A DNA stretch of 64,000 nucleotides from Phallusia mammillata (GCA_965637545.1 OZ281498.1:10168001-10232000), one strand, 5' to 3'. Positions 3,475 through 17,541 are shown, numbered from the stretch's first letter. The notes: generated by a model not told the origin, from the sequence alone. Translations and numbers: made by a program.

Positions 3475-6400
3475 CTGCTTGTTCGTCAGCCGTGTCAGTT
3501 TCCTCATTATCTGATGTTCTGCGACGACAGGAGCTATTGAAAAATTCCGAGGTGGTTTTTAATTCATCGTTCACGTCTTTCTCTTGCTTGCACGGTTTCA
3601 AGGAATACACGTCAGCTATTTCGAAATCCGCCTTGCCCGCGCTGTCATGTTCCACGGAATTGGTTTCATGCAACTGGGATGAAACAGGCGTAACTTCTGG
3701 GGTGGCGTTTTCTGCGACAGAAGGCATAACTTCCAACATTGGCGTTGAGCTGGGCAAATAAGAAGCAACCAGCGTCGGGTCGTGTCTCCCTGTCAGGGGT
3801 GCAGTGGCCGAGTGACTTAACAAGACATAACGCTCCGTGGTGTGGTTATTGCAATTGTTGCTATTGATGTTGGTTGTTATAGGGGTTCCGCGGTTGGAAT
3901 GCATGCCGATTTCTGAGGTTTCGATTTCATGCAATAGATTTTCGTAGTTACGTTGAATTTCGGTTGACGAAACGGGGTAAGGAGACGCCCCACGAATAAA
4001 CTTTGCCCCCAATGATCCCTGGTCGGACATAGGGCTCTCCGGGGCTGCAAATATGGGGCTGGGATTAGTGGGGCTTGTAACTCGGGGAATTTCTGACCCC
4101 AATGGGGTGATCCAGCCGTTTTTCATACTCGTTGCTTTTTGCATGCGTCTGCTATGACATTGTGGCGATGGTGTGGATGGCGGGTTGTTTAGTTGATGAA
4201 GTAGTAGCGATGGTTGTTTGTTATTTTGGTAAGTCATATTGCTTATCGACATAAAACGCATCAGTGGACCAGTTGTCCCTCCGAGATAGTTTTGAGGGGT
4301 CGACGGTTTTGCTAGCACACTCTGCACGGGGTAAGGAGGTGGTTGCGTTAATTGTTGTGCCAATGGAAAATGGTGTACGAGCGATTGTGGTGACGGAAAA
4401 TTTAGTTGTCCGTTACTGCTGTAGTTCGTTGTTCCAGGAGAGGGTGTACCAGCGGTGACTGGTCTTGTCAACATCTGGGGCAGACTTGCTGATCGGGGTG
4501 AGCCTACACGAACCGATGAAGGTTGAAAGACGGTTTCTTGTTGAACTTTGTTGCTTGATGTAGCTGTTGTACATCGAACGTTTGGCGACGCGACCGACCT
4601 TGTTATGTAAACTCCTTCAGACGTTGGCTGCTGGAGATGATTTGCTTCATTTGTTGGAGCTTGTTTCAAATAACTTTGATTATTTTCGTGCTTAGGCTTC
4701 TTCGAGTTTTTCCCTTTGTCGGTAGAAGAACGCAGTTTTCTTTTCACCGGTTGTGATTTTGGCTTCCTTGTGTTTTTTTTAATCTTTAACTCCTGATCAG
4801 CTTCCATTAGCAACGTGTTATACGAAAACGAGTTGGAAAACATCTGTTCAAGTTATAAAAAAAGACAATCCAGTCAGAATGAATAGGATACCATGCAGTT
4901 TCGTATGGCATTAAACAGGAAGTCGGCATGTCATATGCATGGTGAGGTAAAACAATACAGTCGCGCGAGCATAGCATAAAAAACAGGAAGAGGCTTGAGA
5001 AGCAAACGCTCTGTTATGAATGTCTTCGACACCGACATTTAGTACGCCACACTGTGTTAAATTCAAAATAGTAATAGCACTTATCTACAGCGACAAGTAT
5101 ACCTTGAGGGTAAATGGATAATCGATTTTAATCTGTTTTTCATTAAACGATGTACAAGCAAAATACTTCCATGCACTTCAGTAACTTTGGCATGTGTGTA
5201 TCCAACACTTATGAATAAGATTTTTGTTTCTTAAGAATGTTTAGTCACTTTATTAAATTTTACCGAATAATATGTAAAACATCGTAGAACACAGAAACGC
5301 TGTTGTGCATTAAAACATAACTATGAAGACTATATTTGCAAGGTTTTATTTAACCCATTATCAAAATATAAACTAGAAAAGTGGCTTCCTGAAATACTTC
5401 CATTTTATATATTCTATACGATATTTACCAATTTACTACACTATACACAATTTTATCTACGTACATGATTGTTTTTGCAAGCAAAAACGAATGGGTTCCC
5501 ACACGCGTGTTTATGCGGATTTACGGTAAACCTATGTGGCGGTTATTTTTATATTCTTAAGGACAATTTTTTCACAAAGCATAAACTTAACTTTGAAAGT
5601 TCTTTTCCGTATTCTTTTAGCATCATTATTGTCATATAATTACAAAAAATCGGTGAAAAAAGGACGGGGAAAATACATTCAATTTAATCTCTTGCTTTAA
5701 CCTTGATATTGTGGTTCAACTTCAGTTTTTAAACACAAATTTTCCTAGAAAGCCTTAACTGTTGTATTAGACACTATATAAAAAAGTCGTTTGCTACAAA
5801 GGTATACATAACAACTTGTTTTTCACTTAACTTTGTTTCGCAAAAACGATAGTTTAATGACCTTTTGACACTGTTTTTAATAGCATGCAGTCCTTAGTGT
5901 TCAACAATACCGTTCGGCCTAATTTATACATGACTTAAGTACTGATTCTTGAATTGATTTGGCAAAAATAAAGAAGATACGTTATGACGAAAAATTCGTA
6001 ACGGTGTTGTAATGCCTACAAGTTGACCTTTAGTGACCCATGGTTATGAGACGGCCAAGCTGACAACGAGAATTTGAAGACCATTTATCGCGGCGCTCGA
6101 AAAACTTAAGTTTATTAAATTCCATATTTACCGAAGTACGTTTATCGAGTTCGAATTACGTCTTAGGTGTAAAACCTGCGCCAAAACTGAAAATGCGCGT
6201 GATAACTCAATAAAACGACACAGCATTGCTGCACAAAAAAAAACAGCTGATTAATAATCACCGAAACGACTGTCTCGTAAAACGTCTGTCCGGACGTCAA
6301 GCTGAGCACTCCCGCTCTGCCGCCTTAATCTTAAACCAGTGAATTCCTCCTTAGGGACTTATATCTGACTGATAGCGTACACATATTATGGGTTGTAAAG

Positions 6401-9400
6401 GTAACTGGCAAAATTTTAAATACTAAACGAATATCCTGCTTAAACAATTATTTTTCTGCACCATAGGGCATGTATTTCTGCCTTAAAACTAAAACCGTTT
6501 ATTTCGGGGTTTAAAGGGTAAAAAATGGGTGAATCCGAAAAAAAGATACAAAATTCTTTAAAAAACTTTACACTGCACCAAACAACAAAGCATGAAACTC
6601 CAAAGTGCTGTACTTTAGTCAGTATAGCCGTTTCAAAAATTTTACGTTTTGGGGGCCTGTGGGTGAACCGCTGGGTCAATCGGGGTCAAACTTCACGAGG
6701 ATCAAATTTGGATTATTATCTAACATCTCTGTAAATTTGAATAAATTTGAAGCTTTCTTTCTTGACCAAACGCGTCTCACAAGCCAGCGTTAGACAGAAA
6801 AAAGAAAAAAAAAATACGGACAAAAACAATATGTGTCCCCTTCAGGGAAGGGGAGCCATAATTGGTAACCAACAACACTGCTTTAATATATAGTAGTGGT
6901 TCCCAACCTTTTTGTAGTCACGGACCCCTTCTACAAATTTTATTGGTCCGCGGACCCCCAACGTAATTTAGTCTTGTTATGTTTTTCGTTTCCTGCATTA
7001 TACGTTACTATACTTTCGCATTTGGGGGCAGAATTTAATCAACCTTCACAGTCCTTTAATCTCAATACATTTCTGTACTGTAGCAGTCAATGCAACGAAG
7101 AGATAAATTTTCTGTGTTCAATACTTTAAACAAAGCACAATAAGTTCTATTGTTAATGTGTGTTGTGATGTCACAATGGAGGTAACAATCGAAGTTTTCC
7201 TGATCCAAGGGTTTGATTAACAGTTTGTACTTATATACAAGATTGTAAAAACGGTTTGGGAGCTTAAAAATATTGTACTGATGTTAATGCTACTACAAAT
7301 GTTTGCCTCCACGGACCCCCTGAAACCATCTCACGGACCCCTTGGGGGTCCGCGAACCCCAGGTTGGGAACCACTGATATATAGTGTTAGAGTTTCAATT
7401 ATATGCATATACGGTGGCTTACCACAAACATCCCCTACGAAGGGACTCGACACCTTGTCGTTGGTGTAGGGGCTTACAATCACTAAGATCGAGTCCAACC
7501 CGGTACCCAAACGGCAACGCGCCATCCTGGGTACACGTCTCTCTACTACCTTACTTACTATGATGCTTTACAAAGAAATGAAACAAAATGCTGGATCGAA
7601 CGTGGCCCAGAATAAAAACGTTCGCGTTCCTGCTGACAACCTACAGAGCCCAGCAGGTTCGAAAAATAAGTTAGGCTCCATTGAATTCCGTAACCAGACA
7701 AAGATCCTTTCACTTAACATCGAGGGAAGTTCAATGCCCAAATGCGAATATCTTGGGAAAATCCTCCAACAACACAGAGTCGACATCGCATTACTCCAAG
7801 AAACCCACGCTACAGCAACATCACCGGAATCAAAGACCCGAATACCAGGATACACTCTTATTTCAAAAGTCTGCCATGACAAATACGGGATATGCACTTA
7901 TGCCAGAAACCCTTCTGAAGTAACAGAATTGCAATCAGTTCTAACATCCAACAACACTCACAGATCAGCAGTAAAAATCAAAGAACTAACGGTTGTTAAC
8001 TCATACAAACCACCAAACAAAGAATGGCCGAATCCTCCTCTCCCATCCTTTCCTCACCCCACTGTTTACATTGGGGACTTTAACAGCCACAACACCGACT
8101 GGGGATATAATGAAAACGACAAAGCAGGCGAACAATTAGGACAATGGATAAATGACACGAATCTTCATCTACTATACGACCCCAAAACCCATGGTACCTT
8201 TCATTCCTCAAGATGGAACAAAGATTATTCAACAGATCTATGCCTCGTATCAAAAAACGATAACCTCGATCCATTGCCAGCATCTACGGAAATTCTGCCC
8301 TCCTTTCCACATAGCCAACATCGGCCCATAATAACTACAGTTGGATTAAAAATTCCTATCATCAACTCCCTTCCAAAAAACAGATGGAACTTCGAACAAG
8401 CTAATTGGGAAAACTTTGCCAAAGCCGTGGACCAGACATGCATCCATATTCCTCCATCAGCTCAAACAATACCCAGATTTCACAAACTAGTTTTAAAAAG
8501 TGCAAGACGCTACATTCCAAGAGGTAGACGAAAAAAGTATGTTCCCTGCTGGTCAAAAGAAAGTGAGGCCTTGTTCAAAGCCTACGAAGAAACAAATGAC
8601 AATAATACAGCAGACCAACTATTATCATCGCTTAATAAAGACAGGAGAAACAGATGGATCAGTACAGTTGAAAATCTCGACTTCAAACACTCAAGCCGTA
8701 AAGCATGGGCACTTCTACATAAACTGGACCTTAATTCAACATCAAAGCCCAAAACTGCAGCTCCGATAAGTGCAAACCAAATCGCAAAGGAAATTAAACA
8801 ACGAGGACACCATAAACCAAACCACACTTTTGAAAAATCTGTAAGAAAAGAATATCAACAACTATACCGCACATACACGGAAGATTCCAACCTGTCATCA
8901 CATATACTAATGTCAGAATTAAAAGAGTCGCTAAAGCAAACAAAAGCGAGCAAAGCTGCTGGAATAGATGGAATTTACCCTGAAATGCTGAAACATTTAG
9001 GAAATAACAGTCTTCAATGGCTGAGGACCGCATTGACAGACATTATTCAAACCGGAAAACTTCCCAAAGATTGGAAAATAGCAAAGGTGATAGCAATTTT
9101 GAAACCAGGAAAAGATCCAACCAATCCAAGCAGTTACAGGCCAATTTCTCTTCTATGCTGCACCTACAAAGTTCTGGAAAGAATCATACTTGCCAGAATA
9201 ACGCCACTGGTCGAACCATTCTTACCCTCTGAACAATCTGGGTTTAGAAAACATCGTTGCACCAGTGAACAAGTCCTTGCTTTAACATCACACATTGAAA
9301 CAGGATATGAACTAAAAAACACAACTGGAGCCATATTCGTAGATTTATCAGCTGCCTACGATACAGTATGGCATGATGGTCTTCTACTAAAACTAGCAAA

Positions 9401-12400
9401 AATAATAAAATGCAGAACCATGCTGCGAATCATATCAAAAATGACAGGTACTCGTCGCTTCTACACATGTGTAGGTTCCGACACCAGCAAAACTTTTAAA
9501 ATAAAAAACGGGGTACCTCAGGGCTCCGTACTGGCCCCTACACTATTCAACGTATACATCAGAGACATGCCTAAAACCAAATGTCTTAAATTCGGCTATG
9601 CGGATGACTGGGCACTAACTTATCAAGGAAATTGTCTAACAACGATTCAAAACCAACTCACAGCTGATCTCACCACTCTCCAGGAATACTTCACGACATG
9701 GTATCTACAAATGAACACCACTAAAACAGTGACAACTCTTTTCCATCTGGACAATCACCGCGCAAACCAACAACTGAATATTACAATTGATGGAAAGCAA
9801 CTGCCAACGGACCCCAATCCGAAGTATCTTGGAATAACATTAGACAGAACTTTAAATTATAGACAACATTTGGAGAAACTATCAAACAAGATAAAAACTA
9901 GAAACTCACTGATCAACAAACTAGCAGCCACCAGATGGGGAGCAAGTCAATCAGTCCTGAGAACATCTGCCTTAGCTTTGTGTTACAGCGCCGCAGAATA
10001 CTGTGCTTCGACATGGGAGCGTAGTACTCACACTAAAAAATTGGACATCCAACTGAACAGAACAATGCGAATAATATCAGGAACTCTAAAATCCACCCCT
10101 ATTACATGGCTACCAACAATGAGTGCAATACCTCCCCCACACTTACGACGCAGAGCATCAGCTATGAAGATGATACAGAATCTTCAAACACTTCCCGAGG
10201 AAATTCCCCTCACCAAAATTATAAGACAAGCACCAAAAACACGTAGACTAAAATCCAGGCATCCAATCTACAACTTAGAGACTGACAACACTTTCGATAT
10301 GACTGAAAAATGGAAACAATATTGGTTTAATAACATGCCCGCTGGAGGAGAGCTAGTAGACGACCCAACAACTCCACTGCCAGGTTTCGACTTAGCACAT
10401 AGACGTAACTGGGTAGCAGCGAACCGACTGCGATCAAAACACGCTCGCACTGCCCACATGCTTCAACGCTGGGGCGAAAGAACGAGTTCGGAATGCCCTC
10501 ACTGTGGGGCAGATAAGCAAGACACCGACCATCTTGTCCTAAAATGCCCCACAACCAAGTTACAAGGTGGATATCGGACCGTACATGAATGCGATACAGC
10601 ATTTAGCGACTGGTTTCAAAATATATCCGATCACATCTAAGTTTTTTTGAGACGTGGAAACCATACGACAATATATATATACCACAAACATTAAAAATGG
10701 GAAATTCAAATTACTGTATGTATATACATATATTTCAGACACATAATATTATAACACCACCAGCAATACCTGAATAATGTTTTCATCTAGGACGTTGATA
10801 GGTTGGTAGGTTTTGACGCTAACAAATTTCGACAAATCACAACTGGGCACTCCAAACGTTTCCATGTAGTATTTCTAAACAGACAAATGTACATTTTAAA
10901 TCTCTTCTTCTAAGCGTTAAATCGCGACTAATTACCAGTTAATTTTTAGTTTAGTATTATGAAAAAAGGTCTACTTTTCGGACTCTTGCATAAAGTGGAA
11001 ATACAGTAACAGCAAATGTTTTTTCCACAGTTAATCAAATGAAAAACAACTTAAACCAACATAGTGCAAATACAGTGAGAGATTTGTTGATTCTAATGTG
11101 CTAAGCAAAATATTTTATATGTACGTATAAACCAGTGTTTTCATTCTTTGCTTAAATGCTGCCCTTTTTCATTTTATATTTTGTAAATGCTTACCGGTAG
11201 AATCTTGTTCAGGAAATCATCCATGTATATCATTTCATTCAACCTCGGATCATTCATGTTGCCCAAACAAGAGGCAATAGGACTCCGGCTACTTATCATC
11301 GGGTCATATATCGACGTGTACACCCGCACAAAAAACTCGTTCGCCGGAAAGGTTGGAATGTCGTCTTGTTCCAACTGTTTGCGAAACAATGCAGGTTGTA
11401 TCCCAACAACAAACGCCACGTCTCGTACCCTTACTAATGAAACATCGAGACGTTTCGGCATCGGTTGTTGCCCGTTGACTGGAGGGTTTTCGGGTGCGCA
11501 ATACAGGCGAGTTTGAACGTAACAGATTCGACGCTTGCGAAACTTTATGGGGTGCGTTTGCAGGGGGTCGTTGTGTTTAAGAAAACGGCTGGGTGAATGC
11601 ATTTCAATTTCAACTATGCCATGAAAGTCATTTGCTTCGGAAATGCGTGGAGCAGGTTTGGAAAGTCGGACCACCTGATTGGTCATCTTTGCAAGGTTGG
11701 GTTCACCTTGGGTCAGCGTAAGAGCACCAGTGTGGATGGACGGTTGGACAGTGGACAGCTCTGCTCTTTTAGCGGTGACAGTACGGGTGATGTTTTCTAT
11801 TCAAACACAGCATTATTATTTCAAATGAAGGCTACTTTTAAGATTAGCCTACATGTTTGTAATATACAAAGTTATTTTGTACATAGTTGACAGTCAATCT
11901 AAGGTAACAGAATTAACCAAGTTTTGTTAGGCTTCAATGAACTATCCGCAAAGGGCAACAACAGTAATCATGCATTTACATAACGCACCTGTTTGGGATT
12001 TGACTATTTCATCGTTGGTTTCCATCAAACAGGGACTGATGCAGTGTTCCTTGAATACATCTGACTCGACACTTTGCTTTGAAACCTTGTGTAAAAGAAA
12101 AATAACGGTCGTTAAAGTATGTATTTGATGTCAAATGTAAGTAACTTGCACAACTTTTAGACTATACGCGTGGAACACAGCAAAGGTACCTTTCGTTTTT
12201 TGATGGCATTCTCTGGTGTCCTTTCGACATCTTGTTTTTCAGTTTCCGATTCTTTGTTGCAGTCTTCCAACGTTCGAGTTCGTTTTCGATCATTTTCCAA
12301 AGATTTTGATTTCTCTTCAGCAACATTCATTTCAACTTTCAAAGACTTCTTCTCTCCCAGTGGTACTTTTTCCTGATTAGGTAGTGTCGATGGGTCGACG

Positions 12401-15400
12401 ACCTTTGGTTTTTCAACTGTACCATCCAGTACAGTTTCCTTTAAGTTGTATTTGCTGGAGAAAACCGAGAGAAAAACTGAGTCCTCTTCTTCTGCATCTT
12501 GCTCGGAAACTTCTTCCACCCCATCCCGCCCAAATTCGCTCCCATTCTCAGCCTCAACTTCCTCCTGTTGTTCCTCATCTGACGATATCGACGGCAAGGG
12601 TTTGCGGCGAGTAACTGTTCGAGAATTCTCGCTTAGTTGAAAAGACTTCACGAAATCGTCAAGTATCACCGTGGGGTTCATGGTTTTTGAACTTGTTTCG
12701 CCGGCTGCCGACGCCACAACTGGAAAGTCTTTGGAACTTGTTTGAGGTTTCTGAATGACAGAAACTTTTTCTGATGCAGTGACTTGAGTTGTTCTAACTT
12801 GTTGTTGGTCATTTTCAATAGGTAACGGTTTAATTACTGTAACTTTCGTGCTTGTCATGGATGAAAACGTTTTGTCAGTAACTATTGACTCTGAGGAAAG
12901 TGTCTCTTCAGGTACTTTCACAGAAGGTTGCTGGGGAGTTGTCAGGTCTTCAGAAAGCACTGGTTGATCATTCAAAGTTTGTTTTTCAGGTACTTTTGCT
13001 TGCAGATCCACTTTAACTGCCGAGTCTTTGCAAGTTTCAGCTTGTTCAAAACTACCAGTGTTTACCACCATAGTCTCGGTATTTGGTTCTGGTAAAATTT
13101 CAGTTTCGTTTTCGGGTCTCTTTGTATTAGCATCATCATCTGAAACGTTCGTCACACTTGCAAGTTTAGGCGATAGTTTCACTGTAACAGCAGTTTGAAA
13201 CAAAACCTGATTAGGTTTGTCCTGACAAATCCCTTTGTCTGAGACTGAGCTGATTTTTGCCAAAGCATTGCATTCCAAGTCAATTCTCGGAGTTGTGCTA
13301 ACCTCTGCAGAATCTAGTGGCGGCTGTTCCATTCCGATGACAACTGAACTGACCGGTTTGCTGACAACTGAGGGAGTCTTTGGACAATCGTTGTCACCGT
13401 GTGTGACTTCTAAAGTATGTGATTTCTGAGTTTCTGAGGCCACAACAAGACGTTCTGTGTTCTGTGTTTCCACTTGACTCGACTCGGGATTTTGTCCAGT
13501 TGTTACTGAGTTTTGAATGCAAGGTGAGGCAATAGGAACTTCTGTAGCGACTGTAAACACAGGTTCTGGTGACTTAGCTTCACGTTGATGTTTGGAAATG
13601 AAAGATTCACGACTTTGGGTTTGTCTTGTTACAATCACAGCTGGAGCTGTGGTGGTTTCCACTATTGCTTTCTCTAACATCTTTTTCTTCCAAGATTGCT
13701 TCAAGCTTGGTTGCACGACTGATGGTTCTGTCGTTGAAACGTTATTTGTGTTGGTAGCTTGTTTGCTAGACACGGTCAAATATGTTGTGGACGTTGCAGA
13801 CGACGGGGTTGTTGATGAGATACATGGCGCTGGTTCAACTAATTTCGCCTTCTCGGTGTGTTGTGGCAAATCTGTGTTGGCCTTTTCGACCTGTTCTATG
13901 ACAGTATTTTGTAATGCAGGTTCTTCTTTTGTATGTTTAACACTGTCATTTAAACATGAACCAGGCATATCTTCTGACCTAGTTGATGGAACAGGAACAG
14001 GTTCACCTTCCCCCACAGTTGATGGGACATGAACAGGTTTACTTTCTGACACAGCTGATGGAACATGAACAGGTATATCTTGTGCCGAAGTTGGTTGAAC
14101 ATGGACACATATACCTTCTGGTGTGGTTGACTGCAGATTTGGAACACTGTTAGAAGAGCTTTTTTTCGATACTTCAGAACAAGTTGAGTTTAACCCTAGT
14201 ACAGTTAGTTGAATTTCGCTTTCCAAAGCATTTTGAAGATCTCGAAACAGATCATTGTCCCATTGGTCTTGTTGAACAGCAAAAGGCCAATTCTGAATGT
14301 CAACATCAGTAACTACACTGTTACGACTTGTGTGATATGTGGAAGGCTCAACATTCTCACCTTCGTCATCGCTAAACTCAAACGAACAGTCACTTATATC
14401 TTCCAACGAATAGTGGTTTATCCTCACCTTTGAATCTTTATCCTCATTTTCACTTGCAGTGTCCGCCTTTTTTCGGATTATAGATATCAACTTCGACAGA
14501 TCTTGAATTGTCTTGTCTGGAATCTCATCGTTTTCGTTGTTGCCGTTTGCCTTGTAGGAATCTGGCTTTGAGTATTTCTGATACGGATTGCTTCTAGTGT
14601 TTGATCTTTCTTCAAATGCTTCTTTTTTGTGCCTAGAGGTAAATGTTGGCTTGTTGACTCTATCAGGATGTCGGTTATATGTTTGTCGATACGTTTTCTG
14701 ATTTTTCCAAAGCGTCTGAGCCCGTTCCATGCGCAAGAAGTCAACCGAATTTGCTGTTCCCCGTAACTTCAAGTTAGATACATCAGATGGAAGCACTTGG
14801 TCAAAACGTACACATTCACGAGCAAACTGATCAACAATAGAATTAAACTTGTTATGGTAGTATTTGTTTGTTGAAGACAATTTAACGTTGTTTGATTCAT
14901 CAGAGAAATTAGAAGAGTGTTTTGTATGTTCTGGGAATGCGTTTTCGTTTTTGTATGTTTCTTTGGTGCTTGTGTCTGCTTGAACACCTACAGATTGATT
15001 CAAGTTTCTTTGTTGTTCCACAACAAGTTCAGAAACGGTAGGCAAAACATTATTATAACTCTCTGCACTTATGCCCTCAGTAGCTCCTTCAGCAACTATC
15101 GTGTTGTTATTATTGACATTCTCTGATACCGAAGACGGCATATTTTGAGGCCAGTTAGAGGGCACATTGGGTAACATTGCCATTGTTTGTGGAATGGGGT
15201 TCTGCGTAGCATTTAAACCGGGATATACCATCCAGGGTGCATACAAGATTGGCATGTTGACAAACTCGTACGGCTGAGGACCCATTGGATAAGCAGCTTG
15301 ATAACTAAGATTGTTGTTTTGGTCCACCCCTTGAGGACAAGCTATTGTTTTAGACGATGTAGTGGAATTGTGAGAATCCTTTTTAACTTTTTGTTCATCT

Positions 15401-17541
15401 TGGCTCTCTGAACTCTCAACAACTTTTCTGCGAAATCCACGAAACAGATTCAGAGTTGATTCATCCTCGCTCGACGTTAAGTCATGTGTTAAGCTCGATT
15501 CTGAGGAACAAGTATCTGAAACGGACGGTTTCGAATCGCTAGCGAAATGCTCCGGAGAAAGCTTAGTAAACCTCCTTACCACGTGTTGTTTCACCGGGGG
15601 TTCTGGGCCGAAAAATTCCGACAGTTCGTTTTCCTGCTTTGCATCTTTTATCACCGTGGACTGAGGGGCCTTATCGTTTTGTAAATTTGTTCGACTCAGT
15701 TCATTAGTGAGTTTGCTAACTTCTGCTGGGTTGCCTTTGCACTTCTTTTCATTTAACACTGGTCGATCAGAATTAGAACTATCATTTGAATCATGTTTTT
15801 CAACGGTTTTATTATTGCTTTTCTCTGATTCCGTTTCGCTCGTATGTTGTTTGTCACGACTTTTTTTTTTGTCTTTTTTCTTTCTTGTTCTTCTTTTGTC
15901 TTTACAAACACTTTGGTTAGAGTCGCTGGAGAGACTGTTATCCGAATCTTGCTTCTTGTTTTTGGTCTTGCTCTTTGATCTCCGAGTGTTTGATCTCAAA
16001 TTGTCTTCACTAGATGAGCTTCGATCACTTGAGTCCTTCCTCCGTTTCTTTTTTTGTTTCTTTACAGTGGTTTTGTGACGATTTGAGGTTCTTTGGGAAC
16101 TTTGGTCCTGCTCGGAACTAGAATCTGATATATTTTTCTTTTTCTGAGCTTTTTTACAATCTTTGCTTTTACGATTTTTAGATTGCAGCTTGTTTTGATA
16201 ATTAAGAACCCAGTACGCAGGACTTGATTCGTTTTCATTATCGTCACTGTTAGCAATGTAGAATCCGTTCCGTCCCATGTGGTCAGTAGATTCTTTTCCA
16301 GATGAACAGGAACTGGTTGATCTGTGCCGACGGCTAGAGTTAGACGAAGAACGATTTGCCGAACCGTTGTAAGTTCTGTAACTGTTACGGGAGCTTCTTC
16401 TTGATCTGGCAAGTCTGTGTGATTTTGATGAGCTCCGTGAGCGACTTCTTCGCCTTGACCGCGACCTTCTGCGACTTCTGGATCTTGAAGAATATTCACT
16501 GGATTGGGACGAATATCTCACAAGTCGTTTGGTTTTGCTTTGACTACGTGAACGACTGACACTGCTGGAAAGGTATGACCTTGACCTTGATCTGCTGTAC
16601 TTTCGCGTCCGTGTTCGAGAATCCCTCGAGTCAGACGATTGTTTTCGTTTATTCGTAGACAATTTGGTCCGCGGATTTGGATCCACATTCTTTTTAACAA
16701 TTGTACATGAATCTTTTCTGCATTGTGTTGTGTTACAATTCTTTGCTGCAATATTTGGCGTAGACTCGCGTGACTCTCCACTACACGAACTTGGATAGTT
16801 AACAACACCCACTATTTGCTTTTTACCGTTCGCGATTGGTTCCTCTTTCGTGCAATCGTTTTTGTGTTCATCAGGCAAAATTTTATTGGCATTGTGTTTG
16901 TTAGAATACTTTGATGCTTCTGGTGAGCTTGCATCCAGCACAATTTTTCGATGATAAGCCTGAACAAATAGCGGTTTTTATCCTGCGTTTGATTTTGTTG
17001 ATTTGAATTACATTATTGACTTAGTGAATAATTCAAATTCATTGTAATATTTGTGGTCAAGAACTTAAATATGTTGCTAAACAAACGAGACTATTTTTTA
17101 ACAACCAAAACATTTCACATTCGAAAAAAATTACTGTTTAAATATTCGGAAAACATGATAAAAACTTGTAATATTTTTTGAAATAACATGTGACCAAAGT
17201 AAACATAATTTAAAAATTTAAACATGACTTAAATTTTTTAGAGTAAGTTTTTACCAATTGCACGCAAATGTTTTGTTACACCTTTCTGAACAAACATTGA
17301 TAACCTAACATACAACTTACCCCAAGAGCTTTTCCATAACATCCTTTGTCATTTTCCTCAAGCGTTGGATATTTCTTGCGAAATTTACCAGAATCTAATC
17401 CCTTTTTAGATTTCATTTCAAGCCAGGCATTAAGTGATTCGACTTCCTTCGGATGCATGGTATGAATGCCAATATGATGTTGGACGATTTCTTCAACCAC
17501 TGGTATTGATAACTTCGGAAACATCGCCTGCATTGTAAGGC
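3475..17541 (-). CDS. Large RS/Lys/Ser-rich protein of unknown function (likely nuclear); both ends unresolved
   Basis: Phase-consistent GT-AG exons: 17541-17321, 16959-12190 (4,770 bp), 12085-11989, 11796-11195, 10874-10770, 5051-4959 (less certain), 4843-3475; at least 7,257 nt (~2,420 aa). SRSRSRS tracts and KKQKKKRRK basic clusters. Candidate further exons at 3248-3182/3150 and 2763-2607. Confidence 0.75.
5371..6862 (+). mobile_element. Helentron/HINE-like non-autonomous element, copy 1
   Basis: Starts AACTAG; long similarity to 18016-19306; ends CAAAAACAATATGTG + hairpin TCCCCTTC-AGG-GAAGGGGA (6836-6854) + CCATAATT. Confidence 0.6.
6894..7376. mobile_element. Non-autonomous hAT-type MITE
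   Basis: TIRs (T/C)AGTGGTTCCCAACC / GGTTGGGAACCACTG; 8-bp TSD ATATATAG at 6886-6893 and 7377-7384; subterminal CACGGACCCC repeats. Confidence 0.9.
7432..7496 (+). ncRNA. HDV-like self-cleaving ribozyme at the retrotransposon 5' end
   Basis: P1 CCCCTAC 7432-7438 / GTAGGGG 7466-7472; P2 GGACTCGA 7443-7450 / TCGAGTCC 7489-7496; P3 ACC 7452-7454 / GGT 7463-7465; L3 TTGTCGTT; J4/2 C7483-TAAG; starts immediately after the TSD. Confidence 0.8.
7560..10640 (+). CDS. APE endonuclease - reverse transcriptase - CCHC zinc knuckle ORF (1,026 aa)
   Basis: APE: SLNIEG, LLQETH, GDFNSH, DLCL, SQHRPI. RT: YRPISLL, FVDLSAAYDTVW, GVPQGSVLAPTLFN, YADD, KYLGITLD. C-terminal CPHCGADKQDTDHLVLKC. No stops or frameshifts. 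Confidence 0.97.
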   Translation: MMLYKEMKQNAGSNVAQNKNVRVPADNLQSPAGSKNKLGSIEFRNQTKILSLNIEGSSMPKCEYLGKILQQHRVDIALLQETHATATSPESKTRIPGYTLISKVCHDKYGICTYARNPSEVTELQSVLTSNNTHRSAVKIKELTVVNSYKPPNKEWPNPPLPSFPHPTVYIGDFNSHNTDWGYNENDKAGEQLGQWINDTNLHLLYDPKTHGTFHSSRWNKDYSTDLCLVSKNDNLDPLPASTEILPSFPHSQHRPIITTVGLKIPIINSLPKNRWNFEQANWENFAKAVDQTCIHIPPSAQTIPRFHKLVLKSARRYIPRGRRKKYVPCWSKESEALFKAYEETNDNNTADQLLSSLNKDRRNRWISTVENLDFKHSSRKAWALLHKLDLNSTSKPKTAAPISANQIAKEIKQRGHHKPNHTFEKSVRKEYQQLYRTYTEDSNLSSHILMSELKESLKQTKASKAAGIDGIYPEMLKHLGNNSLQWLRTALTDIIQTGKLPKDWKIAKVIAILKPGKDPTNPSSYRPISLLCCTYKVLERIILARITPLVEPFLPSEQSGFRKHRCTSEQVLALTSHIETGYELKNTTGAIFVDLSAAYDTVWHDGLLLKLAKIIKCRTMLRIISKMTGTRRFYTCVGSDTSKTFKIKNGVPQGSVLAPTLFNVYIRDMPKTKCLKFGYADDWALTYQGNCLTTIQNQLTADLTTLQEYFTTWYLQMNTTKTVTTLFHLDNHRANQQLNITIDGKQLPTDPNPKYLGITLDRTLNYRQHLEKLSNKIKTRNSLINKLAATRWGASQSVLRTSALALCYSAAEYCASTWERSTHTKKLDIQLNRTMRIISGTLKSTPITWLPTMSAIPPPHLRRRASAMKMIQNLQTLPEEIPLTKIIRQAPKTRRLKSRHPIYNLETDNTFDMTEKWKQYWFNNMPAGGELVDDPTTPLPGFDLAHRRNWVAANRLRSKHARTAHMLQRWGERTSSECPHCGADKQDTDHLVLKCPTTKLQGGYRTVHECDTAFSDWFQNISDHI

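Follow-up and report, generated by a model that had tools for sequence, protein, structure and literature searches.

The retrotransposon and its copies

The window, by which we mean the whole 64-kb stretch of Phallusia mammillata DNA that was analysed, holds on its plus strand a 3,248-bp non-LTR retrotransposon at 7432-10679. It is flanked by a 12-bp target-site duplication (TSD), the 5' copy of which (TACCACAAACAT, 7420-7431) is found again as the same 12-mer at 10680-10691 (TACCACAAACAT). Since the TSD occupies these positions, C7432 is the first base of the element. A preliminary description of this DNA had proposed that an HDV-like ribozyme begins here, the first base of its helix P1 being the first base past the TSD, and C7432 indeed abuts the 7420-7431 duplication. 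A single plus-strand ORF of 1026 aa (7560-10640) contains, according to Pfam, APE endonuclease, reverse transcriptase and zf-RVT domains (PF03372, PF14529, PF00078 and PF13966) and lacks RNase H; its product matches a UniRef entry of Phallusia mammillata at 100% identity. The closest protein relatives (P0002-P0007) show 50-54% identity. More distant protein matches, at 31-32% identity, do carry RNase H (PF00075). The element ends in a 3' tail, AATATATATA (10670-10679, plus strand), which recurs in non-autonomous derivatives. Vingi elements, which are related to Ingi, have a compact single ORF with APE and RT and have neither ORF1 nor RNase H (PMC13708176). The window element matches this compact single-ORF APE-RT architecture without RNase H and is probably Vingi-like, the Ingi/Vingi label being drawn from the domain architecture alone.

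The region 7400-7700 was used as query against the whole 240-Mb Phallusia mammillata assembly, in which the window occupies C5:10168001-10232000; it gave 37 matches. When these were lined up, at least 16 independent insertions with unrelated flanks were seen to have CCCCTACG, unchanged or with one base altered, as their exact start, that is, to begin at the same C, and the TSDs of two mini-derivatives abut this C directly, by which the exact 5' boundary claimed earlier holds. That several copies keep an unbroken ORF at 97-100% identity marks the family as young. The window copy, at 7432-10679, is a full-length LINE of this young family, with one ORF for APE and RT. Covariation across genomic copies, which had been put forward as a check on the fold, is not found: within the family most copies are identical, and the older ones show C-to-U wobbles or plain decay. 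The family has no covariation of its own because it is too young and its copies are nearly identical. A divergent cluster of copies, C7 (L027, L029 and L030), is a single decayed and locally duplicated insertion without 7473-7482.

Internally deleted derivatives of the element measure 150-250 bp. At several loci they consist of the first 111-150 nt of the element fused to its last 35-95 nt, and their TSDs abut the same first base, as in L018 (11-bp TSD), L020 (11-bp TSD, ~150 bp in total) and L023. That they retain the 5' region points to a requirement for it in cis, although a promoter would be kept likewise. NARTc and RIME of the L1Tc/ingi elements and the SIDEs of R2 are non-autonomous derivatives that retain the 5' region, and the short derivatives of the window element do the same.

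Predicted fold of the first 65 nucleotides

The first 65 nt of the element (7432-7496, plus strand) were annotated as a putative P4-less HDV-like ribozyme of the L1Tc type with predicted cleavage 5' of C7432, based on the descriptor, the chance rate and the homologous position in relatives that are given below. Its strand order, P1-P2-P3-L3-P3'-P1'-(P1.1/P4)-J4/2-P2', is that of the HDV nested double pseudoknot, with 7+8+3 Watson-Crick (WC) pairs. P1 joins CCCCTAC (7432-7438), C1 of which is base 1 of the element, to GTAGGGG (7466-7472) in seven WC pairs; P2 joins GGACTCGA (7443-7450) to TCGAGTCC (7489-7496) in eight. P3 consists of ACC (7452-7454) and GGT (7463-7465), three pairs that close L3 (TTGTCGTT, 7455-7462) in the hairpin 7452-7465. 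P1.1 is a single WC pair, between G7457 of L3 and C7473, adjoining a U7456/U7474 mismatch, versus two pairs in the HDV-like definition. The segment CTTACAATCA (7473-7482) then provides this C7473 and nine unpaired nucleotides (7474-7482) in the place of P4, and is followed by J4/2, CUAAGA (7483-7488). The first base of J4/2, C7483, is the putative catalytic cytosine and occupies the position expected of the general acid. J4/2 has 6 nt, versus 4-5 nt in the relatives described below.

Two traits agree with what is expected of HDV-like ribozymes. P1 has about 7 bp and begins at the element's first base, C7432; and ACC / UUGUCGUU / GGU forms a 3-bp P3 with an L3, usually of 7-8 nt, that bears the U and the G of the reverse wobble (U...CG). 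Antigenomic HDV has P3 ACC/GGU and J4/2 CUAAG, both of which the window motif resembles. The P1 polarity of antigenomic HDV and of mammalian CPEB3 is, however, opposite to that in the window, where P4 is absent as well, and Rfam gives no match to either of them. The G1.U wobble at the cleavage site, which in HDV contacts the catalytic metal, is absent from the window motif, in which the pair is C7432-G7472 (C1-G41). As claimed before, P4 is reduced to a short unpaired segment: the 9-nt linker 7474-7482 forms no helix, and since only CTTACAATCA separates P1' from the putative catalytic C, there is no real P4. A competing stem, CUUA/UAAG (7473-76/7484-87), is possible within the motif; it was considered as P4 and rejected, for it would use up the P1.1 base and J4/2. 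The motif thus deviates from the canonical form in three ways: P1 pairs 1-4 are C-G where G.U/G-C would be usual, the WC pair of P1.1 is flipped to G-C, and P4 is missing.

Chance and competing folds

A descriptor scan of both strands of the 64-kb window returned the 7432 site as its sole match. All pairings named in the preliminary description (P1 of 7 bp, P2 of 8 bp, P3 ACC/GGT and G7457-C7473), as well as the CUAAG of J4/2, are read from the sequence and were recovered by this independent scan. The chance rate was estimated on composition-matched random positions, where a site counted as at least as good when it had 7 WC pairs in P1, at least 8 in P2 and 3 in P3. Such pairings occurred at 3 of 3.84 million positions (~8e-7 per position), and at none of 3.84 million when combined with the L3 motif. 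Complementarity of this kind in a 5' UTR could be put down to chance, given that the descriptor, when relaxed by leaving out the L3 motif, is noisy and yields about 70 matches per 128 kb. The argument fails on the rates just given for the observed quality, with and without the L3 motif, on the position of the site at base 1, and on the finding that at least seven related families have this architecture at the corresponding place. As the position of the site was preset by the first base of the element, chance is no serious explanation, and we consider it extremely improbable.

Folding restricted to nested structures is unremarkable, with a z-score of -0.75 versus shuffles, which is no surprise for a pseudoknotted structure. 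The minimum free energy (MFE) structure obtained in this way has three hairpins and -18.4 kcal/mol, versus -12.3 kcal/mol for the nested P1+P3 part by itself. These three small hairpins, which include an extended CACC/GGTG P3 and a 3' hairpin, might be the functional structure, serving as a protein-binding or promoter element unrelated to ribozymes. We regard this as very unlikely. Although the MFE structure makes use of these hairpins, its energy is no better than that of shuffles; the P1 and P2 duplexes (-11.4 and -12.6 kcal/mol, respectively) together outweigh it; related elements conserve the pseudoknot, not these hairpins; and the start of P1 at base 1 as well as the eight perfect pairs of P2 would be left unexplained.

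Related elements and profile searches

The same genome contains a sister family, B (L052 and L053), with 39-40% aa identity to the window element. Its 5' start has a canonical HDV-like fold, with G1.U, a 7-bp P1, a 9-bp P2, P3 GCC/GGC, L3 TACACGT, a two-pair P1.1, a long P4 and CAGA before P2', and scores 27.6 bits with the Rfam model of CPEB3 (E 1.2e-5) and 25.1 bits with that of HDV. Genomic copies of family B begin at G1 of the ribozyme; its genomic variants are mostly decayed and show no clean compensatory changes. Across the genome, the P3/L3 core pattern was matched only by copies of the window family (family A) and by chance or unrelated repeats, and no other family came up.

Among 80 metagenomic relatives, L079, L112/113/114, L145, L119, L080 and L086 carry HDV-like ribozymes immediately 5' of the ORF, the 5'-truncated relatives contributing no 5' ends. 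Four of these (L112, L145, L119 and L080) are detected by Rfam. Several of the canonical ribozymes, family B included, are recognised by the models CPEB3, HDV or HDV-F-prausnitzii. The 5' ribozyme of one relative reaches 55.6 bits with the mammalian CPEB3 model.

MAFFT did not bring the structural elements of the window motif into line with those of the relatives, so pair tables were scripted from explicit segment boundaries. Compared segment by segment, P1 and P2 are wholly different in sequence between families and paired in all of them, and P3/L3 is conserved. L079 (ACC TTCTCGT GGT) and L119 (ACC TTCTGGT GGT) have the core ACC/TT.T.GT/GGT in common and come very near to the core of the window motif. 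L079 has a P1.1 of C-G plus U/U, as has L145, and CUAA in J4/2; the window motif has ACC TTGTCGTT GGT, a P1.1 of G-C plus U/U, and likewise CUAA. The L3 of the relatives reads U.(.).CG or U...GG, and their J4/2 has CUAA, CGAA or CAGA at the same place. The canonical LINE ribozymes and the sister families share with the window motif the double-pseudoknot order, the 7-bp P1 from nt 1, the 3-bp P3, the U...CG of L3, the C of J4/2 and the site just upstream of the ORF. They differ from it in a P4 of 4-7 bp or more, versus none, and in G1.U or G1-C, a G-rich 5' strand of P1 and a C-G first pair in P1.1, versus the reversed, C-type arrangement in the window. From this comparison it follows that the window motif lies at the position usual for ribozymes in this group and has their conserved core. 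The homologous ribozymes predicted in these relatives are the main support for a ribozyme in the window.

Recognition by Infernal-type searches with HDV-like models, the other computational check that had been suggested, failed, and profile methods miss the motif. Rfam scans of 6000-16000 and 7400-7540 gave nothing HDV-like at E<=10, and 7400-7540 drew no match to any Rfam family at that threshold. A leave-one-out covariance model, R1, made from P1+P3 of five canonical relatives (5' halves only) and applied at E<=10 to the entire window with its filters switched off, also missed the 7432 site. These are real negative results. They are due to the C-G pairs 1-4 of P1, the flipped P1.1 and the missing P4.

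Precedents for the three deviations

L1TcRz, the ribozyme at the start of the trypanosome element L1Tc, is active in vitro, where it cuts at C1; its P1 opens with three C-G pairs, and its P1.1 is a single pair (PMC3185411). Sanchez-Luque et al. noted that trypanosomatid ribozymes depart from those of R2 and HDV in P1.1 and in how the G-C pairs of P1 are oriented; the descriptors commonly used in searches were, according to them, too restrictive (PMC4035085). The primers given in PMC3185411, when reverse-complemented, yield the L1Tc start CCCTG, P3' GGT, P1' GCCAGGG and J4/2 CTAAG. The resulting 7-bp P1 of L1TcRz, CCCUGGC/GCCAGGG, compares with CCCCUAC/GUAGGGG in the window, the L1Tc side of this comparison being pieced together from primers and not from a tool-made alignment. 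L1TcRz and the window motif have in common P3' GGU, a single-WC P1.1 and J4/2 CUAAG; and like the Pr77-hallmark to which L1TcRz belongs, the window motif opens, from nt 1, an APE-type LINE that appears to belong to the Ingi/Vingi group. The parallel with the trypanosome L1Tc/ingi elements that was drawn in the preliminary description is borne out in the C1-G polarity of P1, the single-pair P1.1 and the CUAAG of J4/2; the L1Tc ribozyme, for its part, cleaves in vitro at C1 (PMC3185411, PMC4035085). The two also differ: L1TcRz has 77 nt and a P4, the window motif 65 nt and no P4; the host of L1Tc is a kinetoplastid, that of the window element a tunicate, and the latter element is without RNase H; cleavage 5' of C1 is shown for L1TcRz and predicted at the same place in the window; and Pr77 promoter activity is shown for L1Tc, whereas the window motif is known from its sequence.

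For P1.1, a fast-cleaving HDV ribozyme of Ackermannviridae, the crystal structure of which has been solved, has a WC pair plus U.U, and a weak P1.1 is also known from CPEB3-type ribozymes (PMC13635239). Minimal HDV-like ribozymes (drz) without P4 have been described in metagenomes and phages (PMC10879173). Likened by their description, drz-Mtgn-1 and the theta ribozymes have, as the window motif, a short linker for P4 and a length of ~50-65 nt; they come from metagenomes and gut phages and lie beside tRNA genes, whereas the window motif belongs to a LINE (PMC10879173). For each deviation of the window motif there is a published precedent that is active. The combination of C1-G with the lack of P4 is unusual.

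Origin of the 5' end

Transcripts were sought in Logan contigs of runs that are probably RNA, a source that cannot show RNA ends. One contig of 3,246 nt spans the element from 7433 on, and contigs of ~3.25 kb occur in two runs (probably RNA), contig ends not being RNA ends. In short contigs the first bases of the element run on into flanks that belong to other copies; the window copy's own flank (7385-7431) is covered by 0 contigs. The contigs are weakly compatible with expression and some read-through RNA, and they were given little weight because they cannot show RNA ends.

That the motif lacks G1.U, P4 and one P1.1 pair, has a longer J4/2 and matches no profile (Rfam, R1) would suit a relic, that is, a descendant of an HDV-like ribozyme that no longer cleaves and has been repurposed. 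The leader could then have another role, e.g. in RNA stability, cap-independent initiation of translation or recognition by the element's protein, and transcription by RNA polymerase II from a promoter inside the element would, by starting at C7432, account for the 5' end. Such a promoter would explain the defined 5' end equally well and would just as well be retained in non-autonomous derivatives. The 77 nt of L1Tc do both, being promoter and ribozyme with a transcription start site that coincides with the cleavage site (PMC3383444), and because of this coincidence a fixed 5' end does not discriminate between the two (PMC3383444). A dead ribozyme is, on the other hand, not expected to hold 18 perfect WC pairs in pseudoknot register from base 1 on, together with the U...CG of L3 and the CUAA motif, and every one of its deviations is known from ribozymes that have been proven active. 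The contigs that link the element's start to foreign flanks hint, weakly, at read-through RNA, which also speaks against this reading. A relic is in our judgement unlikely, though it is the main rival, ahead of the nested hairpins and chance.

We consider it probable that 7432-7496 is a self-cleaving, P4-less HDV-like ribozyme of the L1Tc type and that the Vingi-like LINE owes its 5' end to it. The element would be transcribed from an upstream host promoter, and the nascent RNA would fold during transcription into the nested double pseudoknot of P1, P1.1, P2 and P3. With C7483 of J4/2 acting as the general acid, the RNA would cut itself 5' of C7432, which would process the element out of read-through RNA, as was proposed before. 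Self-cleavage by HDV-like ribozymes leaves a 5'-OH and a 2',3'-cyclic phosphate, and the same products would be predicted here. The ribozyme would stay on the element's RNA, and full-length reverse transcription would copy it into new insertions. We propose that every full-length copy and mini-derivative starts at the same C because the retained ribozyme is copied into each insertion.

Implications

HDV-like ribozymes at the 5' ends of LINEs are established for R1, R2, R4, RTE, LOA and Ingi. The ribozyme-bearing LINE clades reviewed in 2018 include R2, RTE, R1, R4 and LOA, and Vingi is absent from the six that were listed (PMC5786205). In our literature search no paper was found that ties Vingi or tunicates to ribozymes. 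What is described here would be a known mechanism of such elements, in a new lineage and in an unusually small form. Vingi elements are under development as gene-writing tools that retain the native 5' UTR, so knowing the role of that 5' UTR is of practical use (PMC13708176).

We entertain, with considerable doubt, the further possibility that this P4-less motif of 65 nt, with C at +1, may be the smallest natural HDV-like ribozyme that operates in a mobile element of eukaryotes, where it would drive a currently active ascidian LINE and its ~150-bp non-autonomous parasites. If so, the C-type P1 would link the animal Vingi-like elements with the trypanosome Ingi elements, and would be either ancient there or have arisen repeatedly. 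Taken with the CPEB3-like relative at 55.6 bits, the LINE 5' ends of this group would then also be pointed to as the source of the CPEB3 ribozyme.

Should the window motif be active, it would explain why such ribozymes are missed by descriptor and covariance searches that are tuned to G1.U. It would give a eukaryotic context to the P4-less minimal ribozymes, the origin and function of which have been described as open (PMC10879173). The design with C1-G and a one-pair P1.1 would no longer be peculiar to the elements of kinetoplastids, and the 5' processing of LINEs by a ribozyme would extend to another clade and to relatives within the chordates.

Non-autonomous derivatives and possible UTR structures

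Internally deleted, non-autonomous derivatives of the LINE, about 150-250 bp in size, were found at three genomic loci (L018:1409-1653, L020:1501-1648 and L023:1448-1634), and consist of the 5' 111-150 nt, including the putative ribozyme, joined to the 3' 35-95 nt, TA tail included. Every derivative begins at the common first base and is flanked by a TSD of its own. All of them keep a 7-bp hairpin stem, GTACCCA/TGGGTAC, which in the window lies just 3' of the putative ribozyme (7503-7509 / 7528-7534) and which, by analogy with a proposal for L1Tc, could serve as an attenuator or as a structural element of the UTR. The 5' UTR is also complementary to the 3' UTR over 8 nt, 7534-7541 (CACGTCTC) with 10649-10656 (GAGACGTG), and the counterparts of these segments are juxtaposed as a hairpin in the 150-bp derivative L020. 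This complementarity may form a protein-recognition or circularising element. Elsewhere in the window, and unrelated to the ribozyme finding, the minus strand carries a long open frame (12157-16941, 1594 aa), with 36-nt tandem repeats at 13962-14141.

MITE insertions and divergent copies

Three family copies carry independent insertions of hAT-like MITEs, at L015:296-1500, at L021:592-1500 and, on the minus strand, between 1605 and 1784 of L026. Their TIRs begin with CAGGGGTGGGCAAAC or CAGTGGTTCTTAACC and all three insertions share the 8-bp TSD GTGTAGGG. The target site corresponds to window 7464-7471, within P3'/P1' of the putative ribozyme, and looks like an insertion hotspot. Another MITE, ending in GGTTGGGAACCACTG, is located just upstream of the LINE (window 7241-7377); its TIR is related to that of the MITE in L021, and its depth in probable RNA contigs is very high.

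Loci L027, L029 and L030 (G000:C7:16.82-16.83 Mb) are local duplicates, three in all, of a single old and divergent copy. In it, the equivalent of 7473-7482 is deleted, P1' has an extra G, and a TC-to-CT swap in P2 breaks one pair. This copy is probably decayed rather than representative of a distinct active subfamily.

CPEB3-like 5' end in metagenomic relatives

A decayed non-LTR element on metagenomic contig L112, with 32% amino acid identity to the window ORF, has a 5' end (3586-3659, equivalent to L113:3638-3711 and L114:2199-2272) that matches the Rfam model of the mammalian CPEB3 ribozyme with 55.6 bits (E 2e-12; gathering score 35). This score, together with near-identity to CPEB3 across the P1-P2-P3-L3 core, hints that the mammalian CPEB3 ribozyme was derived from a LINE 5' end.
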